From positions 124,001 through 188,000 of the IMG/VR virus record IMGVR_UViG_3300023184_000026: a stretch of DNA of 64,000 bases; one strand, given 5' to 3'. Made by a program: the position numbers and the translations under genes. Below, piece after piece: positions 8,306 to 52,118 of this stretch. Each line of letters begins with the position of its first letter. Positions within the stretch are counted from its first letter, which is position 1. Below the pieces are notes generated by a model. That model was not told the DNA's origin, searched no databases, and worked only from the letters and a program-made list of their open reading frames with translations.

Positions 8306-8306
8306 T

Positions 8307-8951: not shown

Positions 8952-8953
8952 TT

Positions 8954-9136
8954 ATGACAGAACATGCTCGTAAATATTTTGAGTTGTATTATAAACTACA
9001 ACGCTGCGTTGATGAAAATACTATACAAGAAAAATCCAACAAACTGCGACAGGATATAATAGAGTATTATAATAATATGACCGAAAAAGAAAAGCAGTTG
9101 ATACACATTGTAGGAATAGAACACGACAAGATATGA
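8954..9136 (+). CDS. hypothetical protein
   Basis: Short ORF tiling between neighbours. Confidence 0.55.
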   Translation: MTEHARKYFELYYKLQRCVDENTIQEKSNKLRQDIIEYYNNMTEKEKQLIHIVGIEHDKI

Positions 9137-9179
9137 AAGAATTTATTGACATTGTGGGTAAAAATGATATAAAAGACTT

Positions 9180-10358
9180 ATGAAAATCTCATACTGTATT
9201 CCGTCGAAAAACAATCTTCGATACTTGAAGGGCTCGATTAAATCAATCAAAGAGAATTCTTCTTTACCATACGAGATTGTGGTATTTATTGACTCCAACA
9301 GCGATGGTACGGAAGAATGGCTGAAAAAGAACGCACCCGAAGTAAAATATACAAAGAACACATCATACGAATACAAGGGCATAGCACATGGATACAATCG
9401 CTGTATAGAGAATGCCACCGGTGATGTCATATGTGTATTTCACGCCGATATGTATATGGGTAAGGGATTTGACACTAATCTGATCAAGCATCTTAAACCC
9501 AATACGGTTGTTGCGGCAACAAGAATAGAACCACCGTTGCACCCGGTGGGAAAAGAAAAGATTGTTATGCCATTTGGCATGTACCCAGAAGACTTCAATA
9601 AGAAAGCGTTTGATGATTATGTTGAAGATGCCAAGGTTAAAAACACAGACGTTACAACCAGTGGAATTTTTGCACCTTGGATGACATATAAGAAAAACCT
9701 GACGGACATTGGAATGCACGACGAAACTCTTCATTCATATTATGAAGACTCGGACTTGTTCCAAAGAATGATTTTGAACGGATGCACGATGGTTCAAGCA
9801 TGGGATGCACTTGTATATCACTTTACATGTCGAGGTGGTCAGTTCCAAGATGGCGTTGAAAAGCAGACAGTTGATCCAAAGTTTCATGAAATGCGAAACA
9901 GATCCGGTAGATATTATATCAGAAAATGGCAGAGTTGGATCAAGAATGATGAATATCAACATCCCATAATTCCAAAAAAATATAATATTGGATTTGTACT
10001 AACCGATGTAATCAGTGAAGATTTTATTCATTTTGTTGAGCCTTGGGCAACCAACATCTTTGTTGATAACATGATTTGTGCTAAAAGATATATAGTAAAA
10101 GAACAACCTACTACTAAGATTGATCTAAGCACTCGCATATATAATCATGGCTATATAGAACAAATCAATAATGACATTCTTTTGTATTTCAGTCAAAAGG
10201 ATTTTATGCTCAATGCCAATGAAAACTCAGCAATCATAACTAAACTTACTGATATTATTTCAGAAGGTGTAGAAGACAATGCTGAAATGGAACTGGGTAT
10301 ATTCAAATTGAAAACAAAGATTGTAAAAGATATTAGCAAATCACTTATAAAAATATGA
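9180..10358 (+). CDS. glycosyltransferase family 2 with C-terminal extension
   Basis: IPSKNN, DSNSDGT, YNRCI, FHADM, YEDSD, YHFTCRG. Confidence 0.8.
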   Translation: MKISYCIPSKNNLRYLKGSIKSIKENSSLPYEIVVFIDSNSDGTEEWLKKNAPEVKYTKNTSYEYKGIAHGYNRCIENATGDVICVFHADMYMGKGFDTNLIKHLKPNTVVAATRIEPPLHPVGKEKIVMPFGMYPEDFNKKAFDDYVEDAKVKNTDVTTSGIFAPWMTYKKNLTDIGMHDETLHSYYEDSDLFQRMILNGCTMVQAWDALVYHFTCRGGQFQDGVEKQTVDPKFHEMRNRSGRYYIRKWQSWIKNDEYQHPIIPKKYNIGFVLTDVISEDFIHFVEPWATNIFVDNMICAKRYIVKEQPTTKIDLSTRIYNHGYIEQINNDILLYFSQKDFMLNANENSAIITKLTDIISEGVEDNAEMELGIFKLKTKIVKDISKSLIKI

Positions 10359-14536: not shown

Positions 14537-14701
14537 ATGGGTAGAAAATCGCACAATCTAACAAAGGAACAAAAAGATGAACGCAACAGAGAATACCGAA
14601 TGCGGAGTTATTGGAAGCGCGTTGAAAAAGAACGAGCAGCCGGACGAGAAGCCTACTATCGTAAGCGGGATATACGGACTCCGCAGCAAAACAACGGGTA
14701 A
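14537..14701 (+). CDS. 54-aa basic helical protein overlapping the GIY-YIG gene
   Basis: MGRKSHNLTKEQKDERNREY... preceded by TACTTATA and GAAAGG. Confidence 0.6.
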   Translation: MGRKSHNLTKEQKDERNREYRMRSYWKRVEKERAAGREAYYRKRDIRTPQQNNG

Positions 14702-15572
14702 ATGGTATATAGGTCAAAGTACCGATATATTTGAGCGGTGGAGGGATTACCAAATGGTTCGGTGTAAAAATCAAACAAAAATATATCACGCATTGTTGAA
14801 ATACGGTTATGATGATTTTGATAGGATAATAATAGAAGATATGCCGACAGTAAGTTGGATGATGGATTATAGAGAGATGTATTGGATACGAAAATATGAT
14901 TCTGTAAAAAATGGGTACAATATCGCAGAAGGCGGTGGTGTCGGAATTTCATTCAAAGGAAGAAAACATTCGGAGGAAACCAAGCGAAAAATGTCGGCTT
15001 GGCAGACGGGAAGGAAGCGGACGGCGGAAACGGTGGAGAGGATGCGTAAATCTTTGACTGGAAAGAAATATGGACCAAAATCAATAGAGACTAAGGAAAA
15101 AATTCGGCTTGGGAATATTGGGAGGATTGTATCCGAAGAAACGAAGAGGAAACTATCAAACCGGAATGTATCAATAGAAACGCGAATGAAAATGTCCATT
15201 TCCAATAAAGGAATGTATGATGGTGAAAAAAACCCATGCTTTGGTAGAAGATGGATAACCGACGGAATTTCCAATAAATTTGTAAAAGGAACGGCTGAAT
15301 TGCCTATTGGATGGAAATATGGAAAAATTGGTACTCCACATTCGGAAGAATCGAAGCATAAAATATCAATTGGAAATACGGGAAAAATACGGTCAGAAGA
15401 AGTCAAGCGAGATGTATCTATCCGGCAATCTGGGAAAATACGGGGACCGAACAAACATGGACATTCTAAAGAAACAAAACTGAAATTATCAATTGCTATG
15501 AGCGGCAGGCCCAAATCACAAGAAACTAGAGACAATATGAAAATTGCTTGGATAAAACGAAAGGCTGCATAA
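14577..15572 (+). mobile_element. GIY-YIG homing endonuclease with multiple NUMOD3 repeats
   Basis: SGIYGLRSKTTGKWYIGQS; REMYWI; NGYN; repeated HSEETK..MS/LS motifs. Confidence 0.88.
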
Positions 15573-23534: not shown

Positions 23535-26500
23535 ATGAGAAATATATTTAGTCAATTCGATCAATCCAGCCCAGAAGGCGTTGTAAAAGCCCCACGCGGC
23601 GCAAAATTCTGTAGAAATGGTGATGATTTCTTCCTTGATGTTCGAGGAAACTTGCAGAAATTGAATATTTCAAAGAAGGCATTTGTTTATGGATCATATA
23701 TAAATGCGGGATTTACAACTCTAAAAGAAGAATATATCTCGTTTTCAAAACCAAGCGAAACATGGATCAAGCGAGGTGAGGGAAACAATAAAATAGGCTG
23801 GGTCAGCGTTGGATCATACAATTTATTTACAAGAGTTGTTGCAAATAATGTTCCTATATTATTGGAAAATATCATTGGTGCTTGGGCTGGCTATTATAGC
23901 AGTTATATACTAAACACAAGCAATGAACTATGGTCCGTTGGATATAACGATGATGGACAACTGGGAATTGGAAATACCGATTATCGTGGATCTGCAAGTT
24001 TGTCTTTGACAGATGTAAAACTCGCGGCATCAAGTTGTGAAGGATATTTTGCTGGCGCAGTAAAGAATGATAATACTCTTTGGTTCACTGGAAACGGTGC
24101 AAACGGAACATTTGGTAATGGCGGATACAGCAGTTATGATACATGGACAGAAACAGTACTTGAAGGTGATATCACAGGTTCTGGAGCAATAACAAATCTT
24201 GTAACTGGCGAAAATTACAGTGCATTGCTTATGGAAGATGATACATTGTGGGTATCAACCGATGAAATATTTGGACTATCAGCAACCACATTTACTCAAA
24301 TAACAAGCAGTATTAAATCTATTTCTGGTGGCGGCTATCACCTATTGTTTGTCAAGAATGATAATACATTGTGGGGCATTGGAAATAATTATCATTATCA
24401 ATTGGGCACTGAGGCAAGTTCTTCATTTGATTGGGACAATCCATACCAAATTGCATCAAATGTAGCATCATGCGCAGCAATGGGATATCACAGTGCATAT
24501 ATTGATACCGATGGTAAACTATTTACATTTGGTAATAACGGCAATGGACAACTTGGTACATCATATGGATATGATGACTTTGATGTGTCTGAACCACAAC
24601 TGATTGACACAGATGTAAAGTTTGTTGGTGGTGGTGACGATTTTACATACTATATAAAGAATGATGGAACATTGTATGGTATGGGCAACGACAACGATGG
24701 ACAATTGTCCAATAAATTCTATAATGATGTCATTGAACCAATATTGATTGACACAGATGTAACATACGCAGTGGGTGGAAATGAACATGGACTATATATC
24801 AAATCAGATAAAACATTATACGGAATGGGATACAACTATCAATGGCAATTGGGCAAATATGCACTTCCATTCAGTATGTATTATACAGACGCAACAGGAT
24901 GGACCACAGAAGGCACAGATGAATTTATCTTCACGGATAGTTATGGTACGGATGAAATTTACTGGCGCGATGTTATTTATGCAGATGGTAAATTCATTGC
25001 TGGTGGCGGCGAAGGAAATACTCAAATAAAATATTCTTCAAATGGTAAAAATTGGTCAAGTGGTTCTATTACAAATGTAGAAGGTGGAATTTCTGGTATT
25101 GCATATAACGGAACTAATACATATGTCGCTGTTTCAAGTGTATCAAATGGATACAACGACGGCAGACCAGAAGCATTCACATCAAGTGATGGTATTACTT
25201 GGACAACAGGTTCTTTGAACAACACAAACTATGACGAACTAAATCGAGTAAGATATGTCAACGGAAAATTCATTGCTGTTGGCGAAGACAGAATAGTAAC
25301 ATCGTCAAATGGAACAGATTGGGCAGAACAAACTGGATCATTTTCATCATACAACACAAGCGTTGCATATGGCAATGGAAAGTATGTAATATCGACTAAT
25401 GGGGGGACTTATAACAGTTACGATGAAAGAAATACATTCACACAAACATTTGATAATAACACCGCAAGTTATGTATCAGCTGGGGAGGATCATGTTTTAG
25501 TTATAAAAGATGATACATTATATGGTGTTGGCAGAAATGGCGATGGTCAACTTGGAAAAGACAGTTCGTTGGGAGAATTCATAAAGTTTGTTCCAATAGT
25601 GTCTAATGTTAGAAATGTAGCATCTGGTCGAGATCACGTAACCTTTGTAAAAAATGACAATACATTGTGGGGTATGGGAGATAATTATGAAGGACAACTT
25701 GGAGACGGAACTCGTGTCGAAAGATACTCGCCTGTTCAAATAGACACAAATGTATCACAATCATTCTGCTCATCAGAAAATGGAAGTTGTACAGCATATA
25801 TTAAGAACGACAACACCTTATGGGGTATGGGATATAACGGATATGGTCAACTAACTGGGTCTGTTATTGGTACATATGTAACAACATCAATTCAATTGGA
25901 CACAAATATTGTACAAGCGGCAATTAGCGACAATCATATATTGTATATCAAGAGCAACGGAAATTTATATGGAATTGGATATAACAACTATGGACAACTT
26001 GGAACTGGTGACACTAATGCACGTACATCATCATATCTTATAGACACAAATGTTGTATCTTGCGCTGTATCCGACTATACCTCATACTATATCAAAAATG
26101 ATAATACATTATATGGCATGGGATATAACAGCGACGGTCAACTTGGAATTGGTGCAAATTATAGCAATCAAATCACCGCAAGCATGATTACCGGAAGCGT
26201 AAAGCAAGTTTCTGCTACAAATGACAATGCATTGTTTGTTGCACTAGACGGCACATTATATGGCATGGGATATAATGGATATGGACAACTTGGAACTGGT
26301 GATTATACAAGTTATGATGTTCCAACTATATCAACCACGGATGTAAGCAAAGTATCTTGTGGAGAAGACTTCACATATATCATCAAAAATGATGGAACTG
26401 TGCTGGCTACTGGTGACAATAACTATAATGTTTTGGGTATTACAAACACAGCTGACAAAGTAATGTACTCAACTGATGCAACCACTTGGCACACAGCTTC

Positions 26501-26867
26501 AGTACCGGATTATTATTATAACGATGTTGCATTTGGAAACAACAAATTTGTTATGGTGTCGGATGATGACAGTTTTATTGTATCTTCTACAGACGCCATC
26601 AATTGGACAAGTAGTTATGTAACAACAAGTTCTTATGTATCGTTGAGTAAAGTGATATATGACGGAACCAAGTTTGTGGCAAGTAGTTATTACACAGACG
26701 ATGGATATAATATCTTTACATCCGCCGACGCTGTAAATTGGACGGCTTCAACGACTGGATATAACCAGAATTGGGGAGCACTTGCATATGGCGATGGAAA
26801 ATATGTATTGTTGTCTGGTGGATGGCAAAATGATGTAAATCCAAAAGTAAAACTGAATATCGGCTAA
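23535..26867 (+). CDS. RCC1-repeat/BNR-repeat beta-propeller protein, probable virion surface or adhesin protein
   Basis: Many LYGMGYNxxGQLG RCC1 units interrupted by SSDGITWT/IAYNG-type units; preceded by TATTTATA. Confidence 0.8.
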   Translation: MRNIFSQFDQSSPEGVVKAPRGAKFCRNGDDFFLDVRGNLQKLNISKKAFVYGSYINAGFTTLKEEYISFSKPSETWIKRGEGNNKIGWVSVGSYNLFTRVVANNVPILLENIIGAWAGYYSSYILNTSNELWSVGYNDDGQLGIGNTDYRGSASLSLTDVKLAASSCEGYFAGAVKNDNTLWFTGNGANGTFGNGGYSSYDTWTETVLEGDITGSGAITNLVTGENYSALLMEDDTLWVSTDEIFGLSATTFTQITSSIKSISGGGYHLLFVKNDNTLWGIGNNYHYQLGTEASSSFDWDNPYQIASNVASCAAMGYHSAYIDTDGKLFTFGNNGNGQLGTSYGYDDFDVSEPQLIDTDVKFVGGGDDFTYYIKNDGTLYGMGNDNDGQLSNKFYNDVIEPILIDTDVTYAVGGNEHGLYIKSDKTLYGMGYNYQWQLGKYALPFSMYYTDATGWTTEGTDEFIFTDSYGTDEIYWRDVIYADGKFIAGGGEGNTQIKYSSNGKNWSSGSITNVEGGISGIAYNGTNTYVAVSSVSNGYNDGRPEAFTSSDGITWTTGSLNNTNYDELNRVRYVNGKFIAVGEDRIVTSSNGTDWAEQTGSFSSYNTSVAYGNGKYVISTNGGTYNSYDERNTFTQTFDNNTASYVSAGEDHVLVIKDDTLYGVGRNGDGQLGKDSSLGEFIKFVPIVSNVRNVASGRDHVTFVKNDNTLWGMGDNYEGQLGDGTRVERYSPVQIDTNVSQSFCSSENGSCTAYIKNDNTLWGMGYNGYGQLTGSVIGTYVTTSIQLDTNIVQAAISDNHILYIKSNGNLYGIGYNNYGQLGTGDTNARTSSYLIDTNVVSCAVSDYTSYYIKNDNTLYGMGYNSDGQLGIGANYSNQITASMITGSVKQVSATNDNALFVALDGTLYGMGYNGYGQLGTGDYTSYDVPTISTTDVSKVSCGEDFTYIIKNDGTVLATGDNNYNVLGITNTADKVMYSTDATTWHTASVPDYYYNDVAFGNNKFVMVSDDDSFIVSSTDAINWTSSYVTTSSYVSLSKVIYDGTKFVASSYYTDDGYNIFTSADAVNWTASTTGYNQNWGALAYGDGKYVLLSGGWQNDVNPKVKLNIG

Positions 26868-34174: not shown

Positions 34175-34512
34175 AAACATATTTTTGTTATTTAAATTAT
34201 TTCGCGACGGGCGAAGGTATGACAAATGCTATGGCCGTTGCGTATGCAGAAAATGAAGAAGATGCTAAAAAAGCATTTATTCTTAAGCATGTATGCAATG
34301 TATTCATAAACGAAAAACATACACAAAACTGTGTGAATTATTTTTCACACGGAGTTGTTGTTTATGATATAAATGATGAAACCCAACACACCAAAATAAA
34401 AAATATAATGAAGGACTTTTTCACAGAAAATAATATTGAATATATGCTTCATGCCAATAAAGCAGGAGCATTGATTGACTTTTATTATAAATCATACGCA
34501 AATTATAGTTAA
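34171..34512 (+). CDS. hypothetical protein
   Basis: ATGA-coupled ORF. Confidence 0.6.
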   Translation: MKTYFCYLNYFATGEGMTNAMAVAYAENEEDAKKAFILKHVCNVFINEKHTQNCVNYFSHGVVVYDINDETQHTKIKNIMKDFFTENNIEYMLHANKAGALIDFYYKSYANYS

Positions 34513-34535
34513 TTTTTATTGAAAAATCAAAGTTT

Positions 34536-37500
34536 ATGTCTAATAAAAAAATACACGAATGTATCAAAATTTTTAATATGAATAATATTCGCTTAATATA
34601 TCTATTGCTAATTTTTGCATCAAACTCCGTAGCTGCAACAGTGTCGGGAAATTTTCCGGCATCTACCATTCCTGCCGGAAATGTGGTGTCCTTAATTAAT
34701 CGGATGTATGTATATACAGCCGTGGTAGGCTCTGATAACAAGATTGTATTTACAAATGTTGAGGTTGGTCAATATACAATTCAATTATCGGCTCTGAGTG
34801 GATATACATTGAGCCAACCAATAACGACCACAGTTTCTTCAATGTCTGACAATGTTTTACTGGGCAACATGGCGGTCCAAAAGTACACTGTCGCTGGCAG
34901 TAGTTATAGTTATATATGGGCACAAGACCAAACATATGCGGGAACCGAGGCTGCTTCAAACGTCGTTGCTCCCACAGTCGTAAATATACTGGGTAAAGGA
35001 TATCAAATGTCTGATATCAGTTATGCCGGTCGTTTGAGTGACATATATAATATTACATTGGTTGATTCCATTCAACCTTGGGATTCTGAACGAGCTTATC
35101 GGCTATTTGCTACGCTTGATAGCATTCCTTATATTGACAAATCCCCGTATAGATTTAATGCAACAGCAACTCCGACGATTTGGAAATTAACCTCAGAATA
35201 TCTGGATAGTGATATAAAAATTGAAACAATTGGCGGAGTAAAGACCGTTACGATTGCATCTTCTGCATTTACTTACTCGGCTCCATTTGTTGCTCAAATT
35301 GAAAACAAGAAAGGACTGTACTTTTCCAAGAGGCTACACCACGCAGCACTTCTGTTCGTCACTGATGGCGGAACGGACAGTGTTGTAATAGATACGATTT
35401 TACAAACAAGATTTGGGGTAACTACTAAAATTCCCGATCATTTGACTCTTACGGGTGAACTTGCCGGAAGGTTCCAGCAATTCCGTCCAACCGAACTGCT
35501 CCAATTAATAAACACGTTTGAGGAATTACCGGAGGGATTTCATGTAATACCTATATTGAAGTATTTGGTACGAAGACTGGATGGTACGATTAATATCAAA
35601 TACCCAGAAGCTATGGCTATAGCGCATTCGTCGGGATATATAGAATTCATGGAAAAGGCTTTCGCGGGATACAACGAGATTGAAGTGCAGCGTGTTATTC
35701 TTCACGAGAAAGGGCATTTTATATATGGCTCGGTTATTTCTTCAGAAGTTCGAGATGCTTGGATAAAATTGGGAGGATGGTATAGAGAATCAAACGGCAC
35801 TTGGACAACAACCAAAACAACAGAGTTTGTGAGTGCATACTCTCATGCAAAAAATCCAGATGAAGATTTTGCAGAGACTGTAGCGGCATTTATCACCAAT
35901 CCGGATATTCTTAAATCTAGATCAATTCAAAAATACGAGTTTTTTAGAGACGCCATCATGTTTGGAAATAGTTATATTTCCCAAATCAGATCAGACCTTA
36001 CGTTTCAAGTATTTAATCTATTCCCCAATTATAATTATCCCGGAAAAATAAAACGAGTGCAGATCTCTGTTACCGGTGCTTCCAACGAAGATAAAACCGT
36101 AACATGTGAAATAGAAATCCAACCAGTTGGCATCAAGGATAACCCAGTACAGGTTATAAGCATGCGAGTTTTCGGTCCTAAAACAAAAGAATTGCCAATT
36201 GCCCCATATTTCGATTGGAATTTATATACAACATCCAATGGGTCAAATATTTTTAAAAGTTCATATACTATTTCAAAGCACTATCGTAGTGGATTTTGGG
36301 CTCCGGAACAGATTGTAATCACCGATTCTGTAAATAATCAACGATATGAAAGAGCCGTGCTTTATGGTTGGAAATGTTATATTGACAACCCATTGCAAGA
36401 TCTTGAAATTCCAAAATATGTCTCCAACAGTGCGAAAATGTCTGTCATCCCCAAAACAGTCAATGGTCGTCAAGTCCAAATTCTTTCAGTGGATTGGAAT
36501 GTTTCCGACGATATCGGACTTGAATCTTATTCAAGTGCCGTAAAACCGCCCGGCGACGGTTATACTATATATTCTTGGGGAACTTCTTTCTATGGGAACG
36601 GCGTAGCCCACACAGAATATATCATACCCGATTTTTTTCCATCCGGAGTTTATAAAGTACCTCAGTTTTTACTGAAAGATTATGGTGGAAACATAATATA
36701 TCCGTATTTCACAAATGGTGGGGGTGGTGCGGGTGGCGATGGAATTGGTATAAAAATAGACGAACCCAGTCCATCTATAACCATTACAACGCCATACCCA
36801 GACATTGAGCCACCGGAACTTGATCTAAATCGTATCACTCTTGCTGCTACACCAACTGTTCCGGATGCACCGAATGGAGAAACTCAAGTAACTATTACTT
36901 ATATGGTAAGAGACAATAGATCTGGCTTGGGAACTGTGTGGTTTAGATTGCGCGATCCACAGGGTATTGAACATTTTTATTATCATTTACACGAAAATTT
37001 TTATGAAACTTTTTTCAACGGAGATCCAACTGTTTGGAAGCAGTATAAAGTGACTGTTCTTCTGCCCATTGGTTCTGTTGCGGGAATGTGGGGACTTTCT
37101 AGCATGAATTTGGTGGATAAAGCAATGAACTCAAAATCATATTCGTTTGTTGAAACTATTAGATTCAACCCATATGTTATAACGGCATTTCCAGAATTTT
37201 CGGTTCAGCCAATATCTCAAACATCAACCGTAGCTGGTAATAACGTAACGTTTTCAACATCCGCCGCTGGAAGTCCAATCTATCAGTGGTATTTCAATGG
37301 CTCGCCAATATCCGGAGCAACCAATTCCATATACACCATAGTAAATGCTCAACCGAATTCGGTGGGAAACTATTGGGCAATTGCCACTAATAGCTCCGGC
37401 AGCATGAAGTCTTCCATTGCATCATACTCCATTGTTCAGACCGGAAACAGTGCAACTCATGTTTCTGTTGGCGATGGATACGTATCTGGTTTACCAATTA

Positions 37501-38159
37501 CAATTAAAAGTACGATATATTATACAGGAATAGCAACCGCCTTAAACATGGCAGTTTTACTTCCCGACGGATGGGGGTTTGTAGCATCATCGGGTGCCGT
37601 GGGCGAGCAGGGGCCAAAAATGTCACAGGCTGGTTATTTGGAGTGGATATGGACAAACATTCCCGCAAGTCCAGTGACGTTCACTTATACGATAATGGCC
37701 CCGCCGTCTGTTTCCGGACATCAAGAGTTCGTGGCGATAGTGGGTATTGAAAATGGATCTAGTATGAAGATTCTTGCCAACCCAGATCCACTTGTTATAT
37801 TGAAAAAATCACTACCCGAACAATCTATTCATTCCGCCGATTCTAATAAAGATTATAGAATAAGTTTAACGGAGCTTACGCGAGTTATAGAATTGTATAA
37901 CTGTCGCAATGGTTCAATTAGAACAGGAGCATATAATAACAAAAGCGGCACAGAAGATGGGTTTGAACCCGATAACACTCGCAATTCGGCAATTATTATG
38001 CCATATTATCATTCAGCGGACTCTAATAAGGATGGCAAGATTGGTTTAATGGAACTCACAAGAATTATTGAATTATACAACTATCGTGTAGGTTTAGTTC
38101 GCACAGGACAATACAGGGTGCAGTATGGCACAGAAGATGGATTTGCAACCGGACCATAA
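34536..38159 (+). CDS. secreted-type Zn-metallopeptidase (HExxH) with Ig-like domain and duplicated EF-hand/dockerin-like C-terminal repeat
   Basis: Signal peptide from Met at 34578; ILHEKGH; SAYSHAKNPDEDFAE; QPISQT..YQWYFNG..Y Ig domain; two HSADSNKD..I.L.ELTR.IELYN repeats. Confidence 0.75.
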   Translation: MSNKKIHECIKIFNMNNIRLIYLLLIFASNSVAATVSGNFPASTIPAGNVVSLINRMYVYTAVVGSDNKIVFTNVEVGQYTIQLSALSGYTLSQPITTTVSSMSDNVLLGNMAVQKYTVAGSSYSYIWAQDQTYAGTEAASNVVAPTVVNILGKGYQMSDISYAGRLSDIYNITLVDSIQPWDSERAYRLFATLDSIPYIDKSPYRFNATATPTIWKLTSEYLDSDIKIETIGGVKTVTIASSAFTYSAPFVAQIENKKGLYFSKRLHHAALLFVTDGGTDSVVIDTILQTRFGVTTKIPDHLTLTGELAGRFQQFRPTELLQLINTFEELPEGFHVIPILKYLVRRLDGTINIKYPEAMAIAHSSGYIEFMEKAFAGYNEIEVQRVILHEKGHFIYGSVISSEVRDAWIKLGGWYRESNGTWTTTKTTEFVSAYSHAKNPDEDFAETVAAFITNPDILKSRSIQKYEFFRDAIMFGNSYISQIRSDLTFQVFNLFPNYNYPGKIKRVQISVTGASNEDKTVTCEIEIQPVGIKDNPVQVISMRVFGPKTKELPIAPYFDWNLYTTSNGSNIFKSSYTISKHYRSGFWAPEQIVITDSVNNQRYERAVLYGWKCYIDNPLQDLEIPKYVSNSAKMSVIPKTVNGRQVQILSVDWNVSDDIGLESYSSAVKPPGDGYTIYSWGTSFYGNGVAHTEYIIPDFFPSGVYKVPQFLLKDYGGNIIYPYFTNGGGGAGGDGIGIKIDEPSPSITITTPYPDIEPPELDLNRITLAATPTVPDAPNGETQVTITYMVRDNRSGLGTVWFRLRDPQGIEHFYYHLHENFYETFFNGDPTVWKQYKVTVLLPIGSVAGMWGLSSMNLVDKAMNSKSYSFVETIRFNPYVITAFPEFSVQPISQTSTVAGNNVTFSTSAAGSPIYQWYFNGSPISGATNSIYTIVNAQPNSVGNYWAIATNSSGSMKSSIASYSIVQTGNSATHVSVGDGYVSGLPITIKSTIYYTGIATALNMAVLLPDGWGFVASSGAVGEQGPKMSQAGYLEWIWTNIPASPVTFTYTIMAPPSVSGHQEFVAIVGIENGSSMKILANPDPLVILKKSLPEQSIHSADSNKDYRISLTELTRVIELYNCRNGSIRTGAYNNKSGTEDGFEPDNTRNSAIIMPYYHSADSNKDGKIGLMELTRIIELYNYRVGLVRTGQYRVQYGTEDGFATGP

Positions 38160-41954: not shown

Positions 41955-42629
41955 ATGAAAATTATTGGTATATCAGACTCCCACGGTTCTCATTGGGACA
42001 TAAAAGTTCCAGATGGAGATATTTTAGTTCATACTGGAGATTTTTCTTCACACGGAAGATTGCCAGACACACTTGATTTTTTGAGATGGTTCAACACACA
42101 TCCACACAAGCACAAGATTTTTATAGCGGGCAATCATGACTGGTTGATGGAACAAGATACAAACTTTTGGAGAATAATCAAAATGGAGTTTCCAGATTTG
42201 ACATATCTTCAAGATGAAGCTTGTGAAGTTGATGGACTTAAATTCTTTGGTTCTCCCCAAACCCCACGATTTTTTAATTGGGCATTTAATCGTGACAGAG
42301 GACAAGATATAAAGAGATATTGGGATAAAATTCCAACTGACACTGATGTACTTATTACACATGGTCCACCATATGGTATTTGTGATGAAGCATATCGTGT
42401 TGGCTTCAACACCACAGAACATGTTGGATGTAAAGATTTGCTTGATGCTACATTGCGTATTGCTCCCAAACTTCATTTGTTTGGACACATTCACTTTGCT
42501 GGCGGTCAAAGTTATGTTGCTCCAAAAACAACATATGCCAATGTTTCTTTACTCAACGAAGATTATCTTGTAGTGAACAAACCAATGATGTTTGATGTTG
42601 ACAACAATAAAATTGTGAGTATAGTATAA
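41955..42629 (+). CDS. metallophosphoesterase (MPPED/239FB-like)
   Basis: ISDSHG, HTGDF, IAGNHD, ITHGPP, HLFGHIH. Confidence 0.9.
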   Translation: MKIIGISDSHGSHWDIKVPDGDILVHTGDFSSHGRLPDTLDFLRWFNTHPHKHKIFIAGNHDWLMEQDTNFWRIIKMEFPDLTYLQDEACEVDGLKFFGSPQTPRFFNWAFNRDRGQDIKRYWDKIPTDTDVLITHGPPYGICDEAYRVGFNTTEHVGCKDLLDATLRIAPKLHLFGHIHFAGGQSYVAPKTTYANVSLLNEDYLVVNKPMMFDVDNNKIVSIV

Positions 42630-42635
42630 TCATAT

Positions 42636-42824
42636 ATGTTTATTATTTACGCAATATTGACACTATGGTCAGTTTTTGGTTTCATTTATTATATGGCAAT
42701 GATGGACGATGTAAAAGGATACAAATCAGTCATATTGTTGATTGTCGCTGGACCAATGCTTTGGTCTATATACACATTTACCGTTATATTTTCTATACTT
42801 CACAACTGGTTAACAAAAGATTAA
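42636..42824 (+). CDS. small membrane protein
   Basis: Two hydrophobic helices. Confidence 0.55.
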   Translation: MFIIYAILTLWSVFGFIYYMAMMDDVKGYKSVILLIVAGPMLWSIYTFTVIFSILHNWLTKD

Positions 42825-42830
42825 AATTTT

Positions 42831-43379
42831 ATGAGTACACTAAAAGAACTTACAGCATATTCACATGCCCAAGCCGAAAACACGCCTTTTATGCGATTGT
42901 TTATGGCAAAGGCTCTTACAGAAGAAGAGTACATGGAATATATTACTCAACTTTCTGTTATTTATACAGCACTTGAGTTTGCTGCCGAAAAGGTTGGCAT
43001 ATTACAAGAACTTGATGGCATTCAACGAGCATCAAAAGTGCGAGCAGATGTATATGAACTAAACAAGAAACTTGGCAAACAATCCAAGATTTATTGGGAA
43101 ACTATTATGTATTACAACGAGATTACTCGTATGACAGAACGAGATGAAATTCTTGCTCATTTTTATGTGCGATATGCTGGTGATATGTATGGTGGTCAGA
43201 TGCTCAAGCCGCTTGCTCATGGCAGCGGAACAATGTATGATTTTGACGACAAGTTGCCAGTTCTGCGTCAAAAGATGCGTGAGCTTGCTACACCAGAACT
43301 TGCTGATGATGCCAACATGGCTTTTAACAGAACAATTGATGTTCTAAACTGCTCCATCATACACGTCGGCACATTCTGA
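42831..43379 (+). CDS. ho1: heme oxygenase
   Basis: LKELT..SHAQAE (proximal His), IYTALE, AHFYVRYAGDMYGGQ. Confidence 0.9.
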   Translation: MSTLKELTAYSHAQAENTPFMRLFMAKALTEEEYMEYITQLSVIYTALEFAAEKVGILQELDGIQRASKVRADVYELNKKLGKQSKIYWETIMYYNEITRMTERDEILAHFYVRYAGDMYGGQMLKPLAHGSGTMYDFDDKLPVLRQKMRELATPELADDANMAFNRTIDVLNCSIIHVGTF

Positions 43380-43380
43380 T

Positions 43381-44058
43381 ATGAGTGTTATATTCGACGA
43401 AATGAAAGTGTTGTCTAGTGATTTATATCTAAAAATCGCGAAGGACAATAATGAAATAGAAAGTGATATGCTGACTGCATATAACTGGACCAATCGTATA
43501 TTTCGTGGAGCAAAATTTCGTCGTGGTCATATTGAAATATTGAATGTTGTCGAAGACAAAAAGATGTGGATTATGCATATATGTATATTTCCACATCTTG
43601 ATGACACTTCACCAATATTTGGCTTTGATGTAATTTGTGGTGCCAATAAGATCACAGGAATATTTCTTGATTTTAGTATGGCAACAAACAATCATCCCAT
43701 GAACGTATGGTTTAAAAATAGAACCAAAGATGTTGTATGGAAAAAAGATCGTGAGTTGCCAGATTGGGGCAAGCGTATATTCAGTGAAAATATGATTGCT
43801 GCTGGTGGAGTAAACACCGAATCTGAACTAAATCAAATCATTGAAGTAGCCAAAGATTGCTTGGATTATTATGTAAATAATGTGGGCAGAACCATTGTTG
43901 ATTTTAGCGTGGCAGAACGACACAACAAATATTGTATAAATCAAAAAGAAAATGTTCATACAAAACGGTTTTTGATAAACTGCGGATATAAAGAAGATGA
44001 TGTCAAAAATTTTATTGACAAACACCTGTTTCCTGAAGTAAAATACAACAATATATGA
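43381..44058 (+). CDS. ferredoxin-dependent bilin reductase (PcyA/PcyX family)
   Basis: FRRGHIE, MHICIFP, PIFGFDVI, LDFS, RELPDW..IFS, YCINQKEN.HT; 1 nt downstream of the heme oxygenase. Confidence 0.85.
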   Translation: MSVIFDEMKVLSSDLYLKIAKDNNEIESDMLTAYNWTNRIFRGAKFRRGHIEILNVVEDKKMWIMHICIFPHLDDTSPIFGFDVICGANKITGIFLDFSMATNNHPMNVWFKNRTKDVVWKKDRELPDWGKRIFSENMIAAGGVNTESELNQIIEVAKDCLDYYVNNVGRTIVDFSVAERHNKYCINQKENVHTKRFLINCGYKEDDVKNFIDKHLFPEVKYNNI

Positions 44059-46640: not shown

Positions 46641-47045
46641 ATGGAACCATCATATGCACCCATCAATGAAAAAGTAGATGCTGCTGTAAAGCAATATACA
46701 AATGCTATTATAGAACATATTACTACCATAAATCCAGATATTGATTATGACTTGGACTATGATGAAACTACTAACAGTGCCAATACTCAAAAATCATCTA
46801 TAGCAAATATACATACTGAGCGTGGGTTTGTTACAATATTTCCAGATTTTATGCATGAATCTGCAAAAGCATCATTGCTGAACAGAGGAATGATAAGATC
46901 AATGGAACTTGAGGGGTTTGATGAAGACCAAATAAACGATGCACCAATTTATGGTACGCCTATGCCTTTTAGTATTGAAAATGCAAAAATATTCGCTATA
47001 ATTCTAACAAGAGACATGGGATTGCAACATCAGAAAAACTTATAG
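46641..47045 (+). CDS. hypothetical protein
   Basis: ORF follows a TTAGGTACCC motif. Confidence 0.55.
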   Translation: MEPSYAPINEKVDAAVKQYTNAIIEHITTINPDIDYDLDYDETTNSANTQKSSIANIHTERGFVTIFPDFMHESAKASLLNRGMIRSMELEGFDEDQINDAPIYGTPMPFSIENAKIFAIILTRDMGLQHQKNL

Positions 47046-47076
47046 TGTGTAGATTACACAGCGAGATAAATAATTT

Positions 47077-47703
47077 ATGAATAACAATATTGTAGAATTG
47101 CTGGGATGGTACGGAGACGATACTATAATTGCTTGCTCGGCTTGGACATCCACCAGTAGAGAGATTACAGATGAAAAACGTAATCGCATTCCATCGTTGC
47201 TAAAGATGCTGGCAGATGCTGGCCATCATACGCCATTTGAAAAATCTTCTTTACATTTTCTTATAGACACTGACATTGCAAGTCATATTCATTTGATAAA
47301 ACATCGAGTTGGTGTTTCTGTGAACGGAGAAAGTGCCAGATATAAAGAAATTAAGCAGGATAAGTATGTGGTTCCGACCGATTGGCCCGAAGATTGGCAA
47401 AATATTTTAAAATCTTATACACAACAAGGAAATGATTTATATCACAAGTGTGTAGCTGATCTTGTAAATAGAGGTATGGACAAGAAGCGTGTCAAAGAAA
47501 GCGCACGTTTTTTTAAAACATACAATAGTAAAATTTCCGCAGATGTTATGTTTAATTGGCGTTCATTTTATCATTTCTTAGAGTTGAGAAACAAACCAGA
47601 TGCTCAAAAAGAAATTCGAGAAATTGCAAGTGAAATGTTAAGATTGGTAAAGCAAATAGATGGACATCCATTCAAGCACACAATTGATGCATTTAATTTA
47701 TAA
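47077..47703 (+). CDS. thyX: FAD-dependent thymidylate synthase
   Basis: GHHTPFE, HLIKHRVGVSVNGESARY (R/KHRx8S), ESAR, NWRSF, AQKEIR. Confidence 0.9.
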   Translation: MNNNIVELLGWYGDDTIIACSAWTSTSREITDEKRNRIPSLLKMLADAGHHTPFEKSSLHFLIDTDIASHIHLIKHRVGVSVNGESARYKEIKQDKYVVPTDWPEDWQNILKSYTQQGNDLYHKCVADLVNRGMDKKRVKESARFFKTYNSKISADVMFNWRSFYHFLELRNKPDAQKEIREIASEMLRLVKQIDGHPFKHTIDAFNL

Positions 47704-47713
47704 AAAACAAATC

Positions 47714-48169
47714 ATGCACACAGACAAAGTAGAAACTACAGTTGAACAACATATATCAGAGTATGATGCTAAGACATATATTGATTTCAAGTTTGTTATA
47801 AAAGAATTATATGGTTATGGCGTGTTGCTATTCAATCCACCATTGGTTGTAGATGGTTCAATCGAAGTTGATGGAGAAATTGCGTATTATGGTTATGATT
47901 TTGGTATGTCTGACAAAGTATGTGTGAACAGACAAGACAATTATCTTTACAACTATGACAATGCCAACGCAGAATCCAATATTTTAAAAACCATACTCAA
48001 TATAATCAAATATGATTTGCAACATGCATTCAATCATATTGATATGGACCCAAATTATAGTCATACACATTGGGCACTGAGAGCAGAACTGCGAGATAGA
48101 ACAACATCATATGATTGGCACGAAGACCTAGTGGAGAAGCAGACGGAGTTTGATTTTAATAAAAAGTAA
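47714..48169 (+). CDS. hypothetical protein
   Basis: Start taken at MHTDKVE. Confidence 0.55.
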   Translation: MHTDKVETTVEQHISEYDAKTYIDFKFVIKELYGYGVLLFNPPLVVDGSIEVDGEIAYYGYDFGMSDKVCVNRQDNYLYNYDNANAESNILKTILNIIKYDLQHAFNHIDMDPNYSHTHWALRAELRDRTTSYDWHEDLVEKQTEFDFNKK

Positions 48170-48206
48170 TTGACATTATATAAAAAGATGTCATTGTGGT
48201 TGGTAT

Positions 48207-49202
48207 ATGAAATACGAACCAACTCTCACCGACATTGCCAACTATGATCGCGTTTTCACCTATTCGTGGGCTTATAGCGACTGGCCCGACCAGAACAAGT
48301 TTGGCGACACTTGGGTTCCAGCCGGTGTGAATGCGTTCGTCAAATGCGCCGCACGTGTTCGCGAAAGTCTAAACGTGCTCAAGCATGACTTTGACTCTGG
48401 CAAAGTTACCATTCACAATATTTGGGACGTGAGTGAGTATGCCAAAAAAATTGGCAAGTTCAAGATGCACAGCAAGGTTGACACCTCGATTGGTGACAAA
48501 GTTGGTCTTCGCGTTGATGGTTCCGCCGATTTGTATAACCTATCTCCAGCAGAAATGGCTATCCGGGTCAACGTGGAATTGTCCAAAATGGGACAACCCC
48601 TGAAGCGTTGTGGCTTAACCACTTGGCAATATCGCGCCGTGTCGGAAACGATTGAAGCATTTGAAGATGGTGCCACAGTGGTTTTGGCTGACATGTGCGC
48701 TCGTTCTGGCAAAACTTTGTATATTGGTGCAACTTTGCTTGAAACTGCGGCACCTATCACGGTTGTTGCAAGTTATGTTCTTACATCGTTTACGAGCGTC
48801 ATTGTTGATTTTTCCGGTTTTGAACAGTTCAAAAACGTGGTTTTTGTTGATAGCAAAGATGTTGACTACAAAAAGCAAGTCAAAGAAGCTCGGGCGGAAG
48901 GAAAGCAAGTTGTTGTTTTCTTGAGTCTTTGTAAGGGCGGTATTTCCGAAAACAAGCGCGAAGAGCGAATTGAGTTTCTGTTTGGTATGCAAGAGCAAGT
49001 GTTACTTGTCGTTGATGAAGCTGATTATGGTGCTTGGAAAGCTGGTCAATGCGATCCTTTAATCAAAAATGTCAGGGACGACGATCTCGTTATTTTGATG
49101 ACTGGCACGAATGCTGATCGTGCTATTGGTGGCTGGAATATTGATGCAGTAGTGCAAGTTACATATCTTGAAATGCTCATGGAGAAGAAAGAATCGCAAT
49201 AA
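48207..49202 (+). CDS. putative nuclease domain plus SF2 helicase N-terminal (RecA1) half
   Basis: YSWAY..PDQNKFGDT (T5orf172/GIY-YIG-like); CARSGKT Walker A; VVDEADYG; LMTGT; own promoter at 48170. Confidence 0.7.
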   Translation: MKYEPTLTDIANYDRVFTYSWAYSDWPDQNKFGDTWVPAGVNAFVKCAARVRESLNVLKHDFDSGKVTIHNIWDVSEYAKKIGKFKMHSKVDTSIGDKVGLRVDGSADLYNLSPAEMAIRVNVELSKMGQPLKRCGLTTWQYRAVSETIEAFEDGATVVLADMCARSGKTLYIGATLLETAAPITVVASYVLTSFTSVIVDFSGFEQFKNVVFVDSKDVDYKKQVKEARAEGKQVVVFLSLCKGGISENKREERIEFLFGMQEQVLLVVDEADYGAWKAGQCDPLIKNVRDDDLVILMTGTNADRAIGGWNIDAVVQVTYLEMLMEKKESQ

Positions 49203-49246
49203 AAAGCCAGCTTGACTTTTATAAAAACACTGACAATATAACTAAT

Positions 49247-50497
49247 ATGAAATTGACCCACTTTGAAATTGATCCATCTCGCCACGCTCTTGTTGTTGAC
49301 GTTGAGTTTTATCAGATGAATTTGAAGAATGTAGTTGATGGTGCTCGTAAAAATGATCCTGAACTATTCAGTGACGAGGGTATTTATCTACCCGCTTGGA
49401 GTAAGTTTGCGAAAAGCCCTATCAAGGCTAAAGGATTTTGGACGTATATGCTGCAATCGGTATTTGATGGTAAGCATGGTTATGACGAGCTTAACTTTGA
49501 TTTTCAACGAAACAGTGTAAATGACTCTGGTGTGTATATGATGTTTATGCCAGGTAATATGAAGATTGTGTGCTTGCGAGAGGCCGCTTTACTTGCTGAG
49601 TCGGCACTTCAAAATTTCTCTGTTGTCGTATTATCTAGCATCAATGGTGTTACAAACGCAAGTGCTCAATCCGATACCAAAGATGCCATTGAACTTGCTC
49701 GACGCAATGGAAAAAAGGTTCTTATTCTATCAACATGCTTGGCACAGCGTTCTTTTAGCGTTGGTGAGATTTCTGGAGTGTTTCTAGCATATGACAATGG
49801 CGAAGCTGGTGCAACTATCCAGAAAATTTCTCGCGGACTCACTCCGTCTGTCGTGGGTAAGATTGGACGAATTGTGAGTCTTTCGTTCGACCCACACCGA
49901 GATGACAAACTGGACAGCTTGATCTTGCAAACCGCCGTCAATTATCAAAAGAGTCACGATATTGCATCTATCAAAGAGGCACTCGCTCTTGTGCTCAAGA
50001 CCGTGGATATTTTCAGTTGCCAAGCTGGCGGTGCCGTAAAGATCGACGTAAGTACATATCTTGAAGAGATCGTTAATCAAGCTCGTATTAGCCGAGTTGT
50101 TGGTCGCATATCATATGTTGATAAGTTGAGTGAAAGTTTGCGTCAAGCATTACTCAATAGCAATTTTAGTCACTACGTTCCTGCAACCGACGAAGTTGCA
50201 CAAAAAGGTAAAGCAATTGCAAAGAAACTCAAAAAAGGCACACCAAAGCAGCAAAAACAGCGAAAGACCGAAGATCAAGAATTGCGTGAAAAAATTGTTG
50301 CATTGTGTGAAAATCTCGATGTTGTAGTGTATGGAACCAACTCAAACAATATGGCGGAAGCAATTAAAGTATTGAAGGTTAGTAAAGAACTTCAAGTTTC
50401 ATTTCAAGATGAAGCTGGTATGCCATATACTGCTCTCAAAGAATTGATTGACAGTGGTGCAATCAACTTGAGTATAATTGAACTTGTTAAATACTGA
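49247..50497 (+). CDS. putative SF2 helicase C-terminal half
   Basis: Follows the RecA1 half; QRSFSV..ISGVFL..D..TIQKISRGLTP resembles helicase motifs V-VI; own promoter at 49212. Confidence 0.5.
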   Translation: MKLTHFEIDPSRHALVVDVEFYQMNLKNVVDGARKNDPELFSDEGIYLPAWSKFAKSPIKAKGFWTYMLQSVFDGKHGYDELNFDFQRNSVNDSGVYMMFMPGNMKIVCLREAALLAESALQNFSVVVLSSINGVTNASAQSDTKDAIELARRNGKKVLILSTCLAQRSFSVGEISGVFLAYDNGEAGATIQKISRGLTPSVVGKIGRIVSLSFDPHRDDKLDSLILQTAVNYQKSHDIASIKEALALVLKTVDIFSCQAGGAVKIDVSTYLEEIVNQARISRVVGRISYVDKLSESLRQALLNSNFSHYVPATDEVAQKGKAIAKKLKKGTPKQQKQRKTEDQELREKIVALCENLDVVVYGTNSNNMAEAIKVLKVSKELQVSFQDEAGMPYTALKELIDSGAINLSIIELVKY

Positions 50498-50541
50498 AAC
50501 ACCTTGACTTTTTATAAATAAGGTTCATTATCTTCTACACT

Positions 50542-51690
50542 ATGAAGAAAGAAAACATGATTTTCCGCTTGAAGATGGAGATTGGCAGTCTCGTGAATGA
50601 GATGGTCGCCAAACTTCCAGATGAACTATTTTCAAGCGATTCTACCACATTCCTCGATCCTAGTATGGGTGGAGGACAATATGTATCAGCAATTGAAAAT
50701 AGGCTTCGCACACACGGTCACACTGATAAAAATATCAAAAGTCGTGTGTTTGGTGTTGAGAAAAATATGCTGCGTGTAAATTATGCAATCAAGAAGAACA
50801 AACTTGTTGGAACATACAGTGTTGACAAGAGTGATGTTCCATCTATACTTATATGTAGTATGAAATTTGATTGTATAGTTGGCAATCCCCCTTATCAAAC
50901 CCAGACTGATGGAAACAGTCGTCCTATCTGGCATTTATTTGTTGAAAGTTCTATTAATACTTTAGAAGATGGTGGGTATCTTTGTTACGTACATCCGTCG
51001 GGCTGGAGGAATGTTGAAGGTAAATTTAAAAATACTGGAAATTTGTTGGCATTGAAAGATGTTCAATATTTAGAAATTCATAATGAAAAAGATGGTATGA
51101 ATACATTTGGTGCAGAAACACGTTACGATTGGTATGTAATGAAAAACATACCATCCAAAAACAAAACCATCGTCAAATTCCAAGATAATGAAATTCGTCA
51201 AGTGGATCTGTCGTCGTTGCCATTTATTCCAAATGGGGAGTTTGATAAAATTTCTGATTTATTAGCAAAAAATGGGGAAGACAAATGCAATGTTCTTTAC
51301 TCGTGCGAGTATCATACTCAACGCGACTATATAAACGATGAAAAAACTCAAAAATTTAAATACCCCGTAATTTATACAGTTGCCAACAAAGATAAACTTA
51401 CTTTTAAATATTCTTCTGTAAAACGCGGTCATTATGGGGAGCCAAAATTGATTTGGAGCAATGGGCGAATTATATCCATTGGGTCACACGTGGACGGCAC
51501 TGGGGAATATGCATTAACTCAGTTTTCTTATGCTTTACTCGACGACGCTAAAAATTTGCCAATTATAAAAAAAGTATTTGATTCACCTTCTTTTAGAAAT
51601 TTAATGGAACATTGCGCCGTTGGCGAATTATCTTTAAATTATAAAGTCCTTGCACTGTTCCGTAAAGACTTCTACAAAGACTTTATATGA
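50542..51690 (+). CDS. Eco57I/TaqI-like N6-adenine DNA methyltransferase with TRD
   Basis: FLDPSMGGG (motif I), IVGNPPY (motif IV), YVHPSGW, KLIWS. Confidence 0.85.
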   Translation: MKKENMIFRLKMEIGSLVNEMVAKLPDELFSSDSTTFLDPSMGGGQYVSAIENRLRTHGHTDKNIKSRVFGVEKNMLRVNYAIKKNKLVGTYSVDKSDVPSILICSMKFDCIVGNPPYQTQTDGNSRPIWHLFVESSINTLEDGGYLCYVHPSGWRNVEGKFKNTGNLLALKDVQYLEIHNEKDGMNTFGAETRYDWYVMKNIPSKNKTIVKFQDNEIRQVDLSSLPFIPNGEFDKISDLLAKNGEDKCNVLYSCEYHTQRDYINDEKTQKFKYPVIYTVANKDKLTFKYSSVKRGHYGEPKLIWSNGRIISIGSHVDGTGEYALTQFSYALLDDAKNLPIIKKVFDSPSFRNLMEHCAVGELSLNYKVLALFRKDFYKDFI

Positions 51691-52118
51691 GTTACAAAAA
51701 GGATCACACTAAAAAAGCAATCAAAGAGCGTGGTGAAGTATTTACACCAGAGTCTTTGGTTGAAGAAATGTTGTCTAAACTACCAGACATATTTTTTACA
51801 TCTGCCGATAAAACTATGTTGGACAATAGTTGTGGCAATGGTAATTTTCTTGCTAAAATATTGGAGTATCGTATGAAGAATGGTATAACGCAAATTGATG
51901 CTCTAAAAACAATATATGGTATTGAACTTGATCCTGTGAATGCAAATGAATGCAGAACTAGATTGAGCCTTGGTAGCAAGGATGTTGAAATATGGAAAGT
52001 GTTGCAGCATAATATTGTTTGTGCTAATGCTCTTGATGCTAATCATAATGGTTGGAATGATGTTGGTTATATGTGGGAAGGCAAAAAGCCACAACAAGAA
52101 TTCTTTACATTTCAGTAA
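51687..52118 (+). CDS. DNA methyltransferase SAM-binding half (motifs X, I, II only)
   Basis: RGEVFTP, LDNSCGNGNF, IYGIEL, NIVCANAL; no NPPY. Confidence 0.8.
   Translation: MSYKKDHTKKAIKERGEVFTPESLVEEMLSKLPDIFFTSADKTMLDNSCGNGNFLAKILEYRMKNGITQIDALKTIYGIELDPVNANECRTRLSLGSKDVEIWKVLQHNIVCANALDANHNGWNDVGYMWEGKKPQQEFFTFQ

Follow-up and report, generated by a model that had tools for sequence, protein, structure and literature searches.

A putative exported zincin-like peptidase with an Opitutaceae-type C-terminal module encoded by a large freshwater phage

Domain architecture of the zincin-like phage protein

The window analysed here, a stretch of 64,000 nucleotides, represents bases 124001-188000 of the 297,258-bp IMG/VR virus record IMGVR_UViG_3300023184_000026, which is rated complete by CheckV. 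Within this window, an open reading frame (ORF) at 34536-38159 on the plus strand encodes a large multidomain protein (P0001) that consists of a signal peptide, a zincin-like core, an immunoglobulin-like (Ig) domain and a C-terminal module shared with proteins of Opitutaceae (Table 1). The sequence comparisons described below indicate that the complete gene was likely acquired from bacteria of this type and has long been maintained by the phage lineage, and the protein may act as an exported peptidase on the surface of the infected cell. The number of homologues, >1400, is far beyond chance for this reading frame. Since the phage relative P0004 begins at a methionine equivalent to M15, the true start is probably located at 34578.

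The original prediction, made from the sequence alone, had described this ORF as encoding a signal peptide, a zinc site, an Ig domain, a further C-terminal domain and two terminal repeats, and every motif was found at its place. HEKGH at residues 390-394 is followed by YSHAKNPDEDFAE (435-447), WIWTNIPASPVTFTY (1037-1051) and NPDPL (1082), and HSADSNKD occurs at 1099 and 1159, each time with ELTR.IELYN and GTEDGF after it. Likewise, the signal peptide was borne out by a hydropathy peak at residues 18-30 and by the cleavage junction SVAA/TVSG, which is common to the phage and bacterial homologues. A lipobox is absent from the protein. The Ig domain scored above the Pfam cut-off for Ig_3 and, in addition, matched the tail protein family PHROG 3995 and Ig repeats of tail proteins in the PDB (E 3.5e-20). 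An antisense ORF of 106 residues over the gene start (34421-34741, minus strand) is without support and probably spurious.

Table 1. Features of the zincin gene and its product; positions refer to the window.
Feature	Residues	Position	Strand	Remarks
Whole ORF		34536-38159	+	1207 residues plus stop; likely true start M15 at 34578
Sec-type signal peptide		34578-34634	+	MNNIR, hydrophobic core, SVAA/TVSG; by inspection
Prealbumin/CarboxypepD_reg-like beta domain	34-115	34635-34880	+	weak SpaA and Y_Y_Y matches; PF13620 in homologues
Zincin-like domain	116-496	34881-36023	+	alignment A2; uncharacterised, widely spread family
HEKGH, putative zinc-binding/catalytic motif	390-394	35703-35717	+	H, E, K, H invariant in A2; present in all phage copies
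NPDEDFAE, putative third zinc ligand helix	440-447	35853-35876	+	N, P, E, D, A, E invariant in A2
Beta-rich region	497-880	36024-37175	+	completes the ~760-residue conserved core; no Pfam match
Ig I-set/Ig_3 domain	886-952	37191-37391	+	Pfam Ig_3, 32 bits (cut-off 30), E 1.8e-7
Module part A, DUF11/NPCBM_assoc-like beta-sandwich	965-1090	37428-37805	+	AlphaFold 2 model, pLDDT about 90
Module part B	1091-1207	37806-38156	+	two repeats of ~60 residues (EF-hand loop, helix, beta-strands); ends GTEDGFATGP-COOH
First EF-hand-type loop, 12 residues	D1102-E1113	37839-37874	+	DxNxDxxIxxxE; D, L, E columns (nearly) invariant in A1
Second EF-hand-type loop	D1162-E1173	38019-38054	+	Pfam EF-hand_5 at 1161-1177 below cut-off; A1

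The zincin-like core is predicted to be a gluzincin-type peptidase

Residues 119-878 represent a unit that shares 40-45% identity with the >1400 homologous proteins, which originate from several phyla and are labelled, among others, Acidobacteria, Shewanella, SAR86 and Opitutales. In these homologues the core is usually located C-terminally, after cadherin/VCBS-type repeats. An alignment of 49 sequences (A2; mean column identity 69%) demonstrated that HEKGH and the downstream glutamate of NPDEDFAE, the two elements of a gluzincin-type site, are both invariant. No family in Pfam, NCBIfam or PHROG covers the core. Matches far below the respective cut-offs were obtained at the NPxEDFAE helix for Peptidase_Mx (PF15887; 15.1 bits, cut-off 27), Mx1 (PF15890; 15.0 bits, cut-off 25.6) and TIGR04549 (16 bits, cut-off 75), and the ATLF profile (PF07737) gave no match at E<=1.

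For the zincin model, Foldseek returned nothing significant in either PDB or BFVD. With the exhaustive aligner VIA, and on a model with a predicted local distance difference test (pLDDT) value of 66, about 90-100 residues of the active-site subdomain could be aligned with ATLF/M34-type domains (Z 4.5-8.1); these were the N-domain of Certhrax, the N-domain and the catalytic centre of lethal factor, and Pro-Pro endopeptidases. An Atlas feature search placed unnamed clusters first and yielded an ATLF cluster as a lead (0.80). As no Pfam, NCBIfam or PHROG family covers the core, the Foldseek search was negative and only the active-site subdomain is M34-like, the core appears to constitute an uncharacterised gluzincin-type family of its own that resembles M34 in this subdomain but lies outside M34, with catalysis predicted from sequence and model. 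The gene neighbourhoods of the core in Shewanella, Acidobacteria and Opitutales homologues had nothing in common.

A C-terminal module shared with exported proteins of Opitutaceae

The C-terminal module was defined by an alignment of 35 sequences (A1) as residues 965-1207 (243 residues). In A1, P0001 aligned end to end with the 34 other sequences at 41-80% identity and with 26 invariant columns, which include HxAD, L.R, R.G.Y, DG and the terminal GP. The two repeats follow the pattern HSAD-x-N-x-D-x-x-I-x-L-x-ELTRVIELYN...RTG.Y...EDGF, and the last columns of A1 read ...GTEDGFAPGP. When residues 965-1207 were used in a word search, three full-length kin were identified, together with about 65 proteins that carry the module at 43-53% identity attached to varied partners (Ig, RCC1, FGE-sulfatase, NHL, reprolysin and subtilase). 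The module ends exactly at the protein C-terminus in P0001, with zero residues left, and in nearly all matches, and P0001 also has the signal peptide and the multidomain build that are typical of module proteins.

The structural model of the module was confident (pLDDT 89.8) and displayed a beta-sandwich (part A) followed by two loop-helix-beta units (part B). Pilin, CLIPPER and cohesin domains matched the sandwich to an equal degree (Z 10-13, VIA), and the fold searches hardly extended to part B. Neither Pfam nor NCBIfam has a curated model for the whole module. Among the 35 members of A1, five matched NPCBM_assoc and DUF11, 18-21 matched EF-hand families, and five matched Dockerin_1 (best E 5e-6), a family (PF00404) that did not match the copy of P0001. 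Both loops of this copy (1102-1113 and 1162-1173) are followed by a modelled helix as in EF-hands, and calcium binding is predicted; EF-hand_5 reached 21 bits here, compared to a cut-off of 25.9, and up to E 3e-10 in relatives.

In five Opitutaceae genomes (G001-G005), genes directly downstream of module-ending genes encode secreted proteins of ~145 residues (L091-L096) that consist of a signal peptide and a single part-A-like sandwich (25-35% identity), which may represent a conserved gene pair. A complex prediction for one of them (L092) with residues 1091-1207 of P0001 and calcium resulted in a score of 0.15 and a mark of 0.34, and counts neither for nor against an interaction.

To gain an overview of the carriers, a set of 185,579 species, each represented by one genome, was scanned, and taxonomy was taken from the best 80 of 334 confirmed stretches. 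All of these 80 loci belonged to metagenome-assembled genomes (MAGs) of Verrucomicrobiota from lakes and groundwater, and they were mostly labelled Opitutae, Opitutales, Opitutaceae or Opitutus. Five genomes contained 4-41 module copies each, often clustered and located in reading frames of 500-8000 codons. Of 301 Verrucomicrobiota genomes sampled evenly, five contained part B, all of one family, and within that family it occurred in 15 of 151 genomes; remote relatives of part B only, at 33-41% identity, occur elsewhere, e.g., in a protein of Hydrogenedentota. Outside the lineage of this phage, the module was detected neither in cultured phages nor in 2.9 million IMG/VR contigs, and the viral copies found were those of this record and its near relatives P0002-P0004. 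Scanned with the whole protein and separately with its module and its zincin domain, IMG/VR yielded only L089 (43% identity, zincin) and the marginal L090. Among the labelled records, i.e., the best 80 of 334 stretches, the module thus appears confined to a subset of Opitutaceae/Verrucomicrobiota. The statement of the original prediction that the C-terminal pair is characteristic of exported proteins of Opitutae proved correct in the form of the 243-residue module, and the best matches of the tail were neither spread over phyla nor mainly from phages.

Proteins with RCC1 repeats are frequent carriers of the Opitutaceae tail. The window contains an RCC1-repeat protein of 1110 residues (23535-26867, PHROG 16766) without this tail; it was considered as a second Opitutaceae-derived gene, and its identity of only 30-37% to these carriers was uninformative.

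The gene is of bacterial type and has been maintained in the phage lineage

The bacterial protein P0072 shares 64% identity with P0001 over residues 33-966 (75% within the zincin part) and 58% identity over part B, and its architecture is that of the phage protein, Ig domain included. The corresponding gene is located on a contig of 67% guanine plus cytosine (GC) between the genes for a TonB-dependent receptor and a GH127 protein, and MEY4687333.1, a protein from a MAG of Verrucomicrobiota, belongs to the 90% cluster of P0072. A quick maximum-likelihood tree of the core, unrooted with regard to the direction of transfer, placed the four phage sequences in one clade (support 91) that was sister to the bacterial P0072/P0016 clade (joint support 99). 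Both clades were positioned inside an Ig-bearing clade with Opitutales/Opitutaceae entries, apart from the Acidobacteria/Shewanella type. A transfer from bacterium to phage is indicated by the many bacterial paralogues facing a single phage lineage, and not by rooting. As expected for an auxiliary gene of host origin, the >1400 homologues are cellular and the viral contigs comprise only the phage's own lineage and L089. The complete gene, and not only its tail, is therefore likely to be of bacterial Opitutia/Opitutaceae-type origin, and this group is the likely donor. Among the genomes searched, the core was found in only three of the 151 family genomes, at 52-53% identity and without part B, and in none of 401 genomes of a phylum sample.

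A second full-length homologue, P0076 (L099, 10001-13588), is 42% identical over residues 15-1207, tail included. Its gene has only 40.7% GC, compared to 51-55% in the surrounding bacterial contig, and insertion sequence (IS) transposase genes lie behind it; the copy may be mobile or foreign.

The zincin gene has a GC of 0.398 and a GC at third codon positions (GC3) of 0.326, compared to 0.32-0.36 in its neighbours. The means over 262 phage genes are 0.371 for GC (standard deviation 0.043) and 0.308 for GC3 (standard deviation 0.07), and with rank 52 by GC among these 262 genes the zincin gene is within one standard deviation and no outlier. Its codon usage, which had been noted as richer in CG, is literally higher than that of the neighbours; as a sign of foreign origin the observation did not hold, as the gene matches the phage in its composition and has long been present in the lineage. 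Opitutaceae-type loci, by comparison, have 56-72% GC. In a related phage contig (L086/L087, 37-38% GC) the gene occurs at the same locus, with flanking orthologues that are 55-83% identical. Between two phage copies, synonymous sites were saturated (as measured by the proportion of synonymous differences, pS), the nonsynonymous divergence (dN) was 0.20 and the ratio of nonsynonymous to synonymous divergence (dN/dS) was about 0.06. Conservation between these copies extends to each domain, with the signal peptide, the two catalytic motifs and the two repeats kept.

The phage-like GC, the identical locus in the related phage and the low dN/dS indicate that the gene is old and not a recent passenger. 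As far as sequence comparison can tell, it is an old, functional resident of the phage lineage under purifying selection. A recent transfer was ruled out by the phage-like GC of the gene, and an assembly chimera by this GC, the synteny in L086/L087 and an independent spanning contig of 3575 nt from another lake. Apart from the possible source samples, lake and freshwater metagenomes of 17 independent studies contain near-identical sequences.

Genomic context of the zincin gene

Genes for a collagen-like tail fibre, a minor tail protein and a major head protein (PHROG 138, E 7e-74) identify the record as a tailed phage, which also encodes helicases and a DNA ligase; 235 of its 262 long ORFs are located on one strand. 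A megablast search of the 12 kb around the zincin gene against cultured phages returned zero matches. The gene is located between a DNA ligase gene on one side and genes for a Metallophos protein, a haem oxygenase and a bilin reductase on the other. The head gene is 120 kb away, and the neighbours are genes for DNA metabolism and auxiliary genes, none of them structural.

This arrangement bears on the possibility that the protein is part of the virion, i.e., an Ig-bearing fibre or decoration whose peptidase clears a proteinaceous surface layer while the module binds the host during adsorption. The closest similarities of the Ig domain are to phage tail and Hoc-like proteins, structural genes are scattered in jumbo phages, and a host-derived docking module would represent a ready-made adhesin. 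However, all phage copies possess a Sec signal peptide, while virions assemble in the cytoplasm, and the same architecture, including the Ig domain, is found in the bacterial homologues. Because of the conserved signal peptide and the non-structural neighbourhood a virion role is disfavoured, and we consider it improbable.

Several further genes of the window and the record were recorded. The Metallophos phosphoesterase, haem oxygenase (42831-43379) and ferredoxin-dependent bilin reductase (43381-44058) genes lie in a row at 41955-44058, and their order is identical in the related phage contig L086. A sugar-modification set at 1441-10358 comprises a DegT/DnrJ aminotransferase, an NAD epimerase/dehydratase and three or four glycosyltransferases (GT2, Glyco_trans_1_2), and a gene similar to GIY-YIG/NUMOD3 homing endonucleases is located at 14577-15572. 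Local GC rises up to 0.39-0.42 at 47000-51700, an area with two ORFs without family match (48207-49202 and 49247-50497) and an Eco57I-type methylase (50542-51690). The collagen-like tail fibre of 1515 residues (G000:C1:4718-9265, outside the window) has a GC of 53% and a GC3 of only 25%.

Host range considerations

The phage carries 36 tRNA genes that cover 18 amino acids, with U34 in 19 of the 36, and the set includes cognates of 16 codons that the phage uses commonly and Opitutaceae-type contigs only rarely. The tRNA genes form two clusters (G000:C1:85822-100280 and 196133-198156, outside the window), include Ile-TAT twice, Leu-TAA, Leu-TAG, Arg-TCT twice and an odd Asn-ATT, and many of them read codons rare in high-GC bacteria. 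Low-GC T4-like phages with many tRNAs on high-GC hosts exist, such as marine cyanomyoviruses, and phiKZ is a further example.

Since the module should be useful only where its partner exists, a module-bearing member of the Opitutaceae appears to be the most likely host. The identity of the donor, this docking-tail argument, the shared freshwater habitat and the near-complete tRNA set together make such a host plausible, and we rate its probability as slightly better than even. Opitutaceae are, however, an unproven host, and several observations count against them. The phage has 37% GC, compared to 58-70% in every Opitutaceae locus examined, a gap of about 25 points, and the enrichment of the tRNA-matched codons is marginal (p 0.06). 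The T4-type major head protein (G000:C1:280438-282051) is 59% identical to that of Microcystis phage Mel-JY01, 57% to that of a 484-kb uncultured phage and 55% to those of Flavobacterium 'immuto' phages; by capsid sequence, the nearest cultured relatives infect Microcystis and Flavobacterium. No CRISPR, prophage or Hi-C link to any host was found.

These observations could also be explained by an Opitutaceae-derived gene in a phage with a different present host, e.g., a member of the Bacteroidota or a cyanobacterium, which acquired the gene indirectly or in a past host; the protein would then be a periplasmic or secreted peptidase whose tail is without a specific partner. The 37% GC and the lack of enrichment of Shine-Dalgarno (SD) sequences, with a 4-mer core ahead of 7.6% of the 262 phage genes and 7.0% of random positions, resemble low-GC, SD-poor hosts, and the capsid relatives and the lack of a direct link to any host at hand agree with such a scenario. 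On the other hand, the module is under purifying selection in diverged phage copies, with the invariant residues kept, which is hard to explain without a partner. Opitutaceae-type contigs are SD-poor as well (10 of 34 genes), so that SD use does not discriminate between hosts, and 36 tRNAs are in line with low-GC phages of high-GC hosts. The haem oxygenase and bilin reductase pair had raised the idea of a cyanophage. This idea was weakened, as psbA is absent from the phage genome and the reductase is 41% identical to the copy of Pelagibacter phage Mosig, compared to 24-27% to cyanophage copies; for these two reasons the pair gives no cyanobacterial clue. We regard a different present host as a real but clearly less probable option than a host among the Opitutaceae.

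With respect to the original prediction of a host-derived gene and a verrucomicrobial host, the former stands and can be specified as Opitutia-type, while the latter is plausible, but GC, the lack of SD enrichment and the capsid relatives allow others. In a 2015 paper (PMC4642752), P8625 is presented as the first lytic phage of Verrucomicrobiota. Very few phages of this phylum are known, and few beyond P8625 turned up in our searches. A clade-specific tail that selection preserves in a phage marks the host more sharply than a generic shared gene does, and it points to a testable host group, the module-bearing freshwater Opitutaceae, for a widespread 297-kb phage.

Proposed role of the protein

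We propose that an ancestor of this T4-like jumbo phage captured a whole Opitutia gene, which was then kept by selection and now provides an exported, docked peptidase in a module-bearing Opitutaceae host; as a whole, we give this scenario an even chance. The protein would be exported from the infected cell by the Sec system of the host, and the predicted calcium-binding module would dock it at the sites of the module-bearing surface proteins that the host itself produces. At these sites, envelope or surface proteins may be cut by the zinc peptidase domain. The phage might benefit from the removal or masking of receptors, leading to superinfection exclusion or sparing progeny from binding to debris, or from a looser surface layer. 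If the peptidase does act on the surface of the infected cell, this would represent a new phage route to receptor removal or surface remodelling.

Within this scenario, the architecture, conservation, origin and maintenance of the gene are the observed steps. Its weaker side is that activity, export, localisation and binding are predictions only, and further results weigh against it. No curated peptidase family was matched above threshold, and the AlphaFold model of the zincin domain is of moderate quality (pLDDT 66). No close whole-gene copy was present in the species-representative genomes searched. A consensus scan revealed neither an outstanding promoter site directly upstream of the gene nor a terminator after 38159; the best promoter-like site near the gene, at 38212, belongs to the next gene. 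In favour of the scenario, a hint of expression is given by contigs in two metatranscriptome runs that are 95-100% identical to parts of the gene, although DNA carry-over is possible for them and strand and level are unreadable; in one of these runs, the same gene stretches are overlapped by contigs of bacterial homologues with high GC.

The peptidase could also serve as an auxiliary enzyme for nutrient acquisition by feeding the peptide uptake of the infected cell. The bacterial homologue P0072 adjoins a TonB-dependent receptor, and there is a weak match to TIGR04549, the 'substrate import-associated zinc metallohydrolase lipoprotein' family. This match, however, has 16 bits, far under the 75-bit cut-off, the protein lacks a lipobox, and the neighbourhood differs among the Shewanella, Acidobacteria and Opitutales homologues. 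A nutritional role therefore appears very unlikely to us.

A more far-reaching, speculative view is that the tail belongs to an undescribed calcium-dependent surface-docking system that an Opitutaceae clade uses for dozens of giant proteins, of which the phage took a complete client. We consider this possible, though doubtful at present. In that case, the proteins displayed by the infected cell would include, next to those of the host, a metallopeptidase under the control of the phage. Irrespective of the role of the phage protein, two uncharacterised families are highlighted by this work: the zincin core of ~760 residues, with 40-50% identity across phyla, and the many-copy C-terminal module, which behaves like a sorting or docking signal.

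Comparison with known systems

The C-terminal module shares with the C-terminal domain of the type IX secretion system of Bacteroidota and with PEP-CTERM and its kin that one tail occurs on dozens of unrelated secreted proteins of a narrow taxon. Unlike these, it comprises about 240 residues, has no transmembrane or short-motif anchor and is not represented by an NCBIfam or Pfam model. A likeness also exists to the cohesin-dockerin pair of cellulosomes, as the sandwich superposes on cohesins (Z 11-12.5) and is followed by a duplicated calcium loop plus helix, with Dockerin_1 matches in the five members of A1 mentioned above. In contrast to cohesin-dockerin systems, the module has both parts on one polypeptide, at the extreme C-terminus, and occurs in didermic Opitutaceae; its repeats of ~60 residues differ from dockerin by added beta-strands and a glutamate at loop position 12, and part A is nearer to DUF11/NPCBM_assoc.

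With regard to the core, the Peptidase_Mx/Mx1 proteins (BACCAC_01431, PDB 4L7A) and the TIGR04549 lipoproteins display a weak sequence likeness at the NPxEDFAE helix, and 4L7A was among the top Foldseek rows. However, the scores of 15-16 bits are far from the cut-offs of 25.6-75, and the phage protein is no lipoprotein and about four times longer. The M34/ATLF zincins (PPEP-1/Zmp1, PPEP-2/-3 and the anthrax lethal factor fold) resemble the core in HExxH and a downstream glutamate in an E-x-x-A-E-like helix. Model residues 256-374 align with them at the Z values given above (4.5-8.1), with no ATLF hidden Markov model match at E<=1 and a Foldseek E of 0.06. Unlike M34/ATLF enzymes, the zincin domain comprises about 380 residues, with an extra N-terminal subdomain, a beta-rich extension of 380 residues and no toxin-type delivery domains.

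On the functional level, the envelope proteins with which phages block or destroy receptors, such as T5 Llp, offer a parallel, as the present protein would also be exported by Sec and act on the surface of the infected cell. The likeness is a functional analogy only, as there is no relation in sequence or fold and the surface action of the present protein is predicted. PPEP-1 is a secreted M34 enzyme that cuts the surface adhesins of its own producer, and by analogy it may be the nearest functional counterpart of the phage protein.

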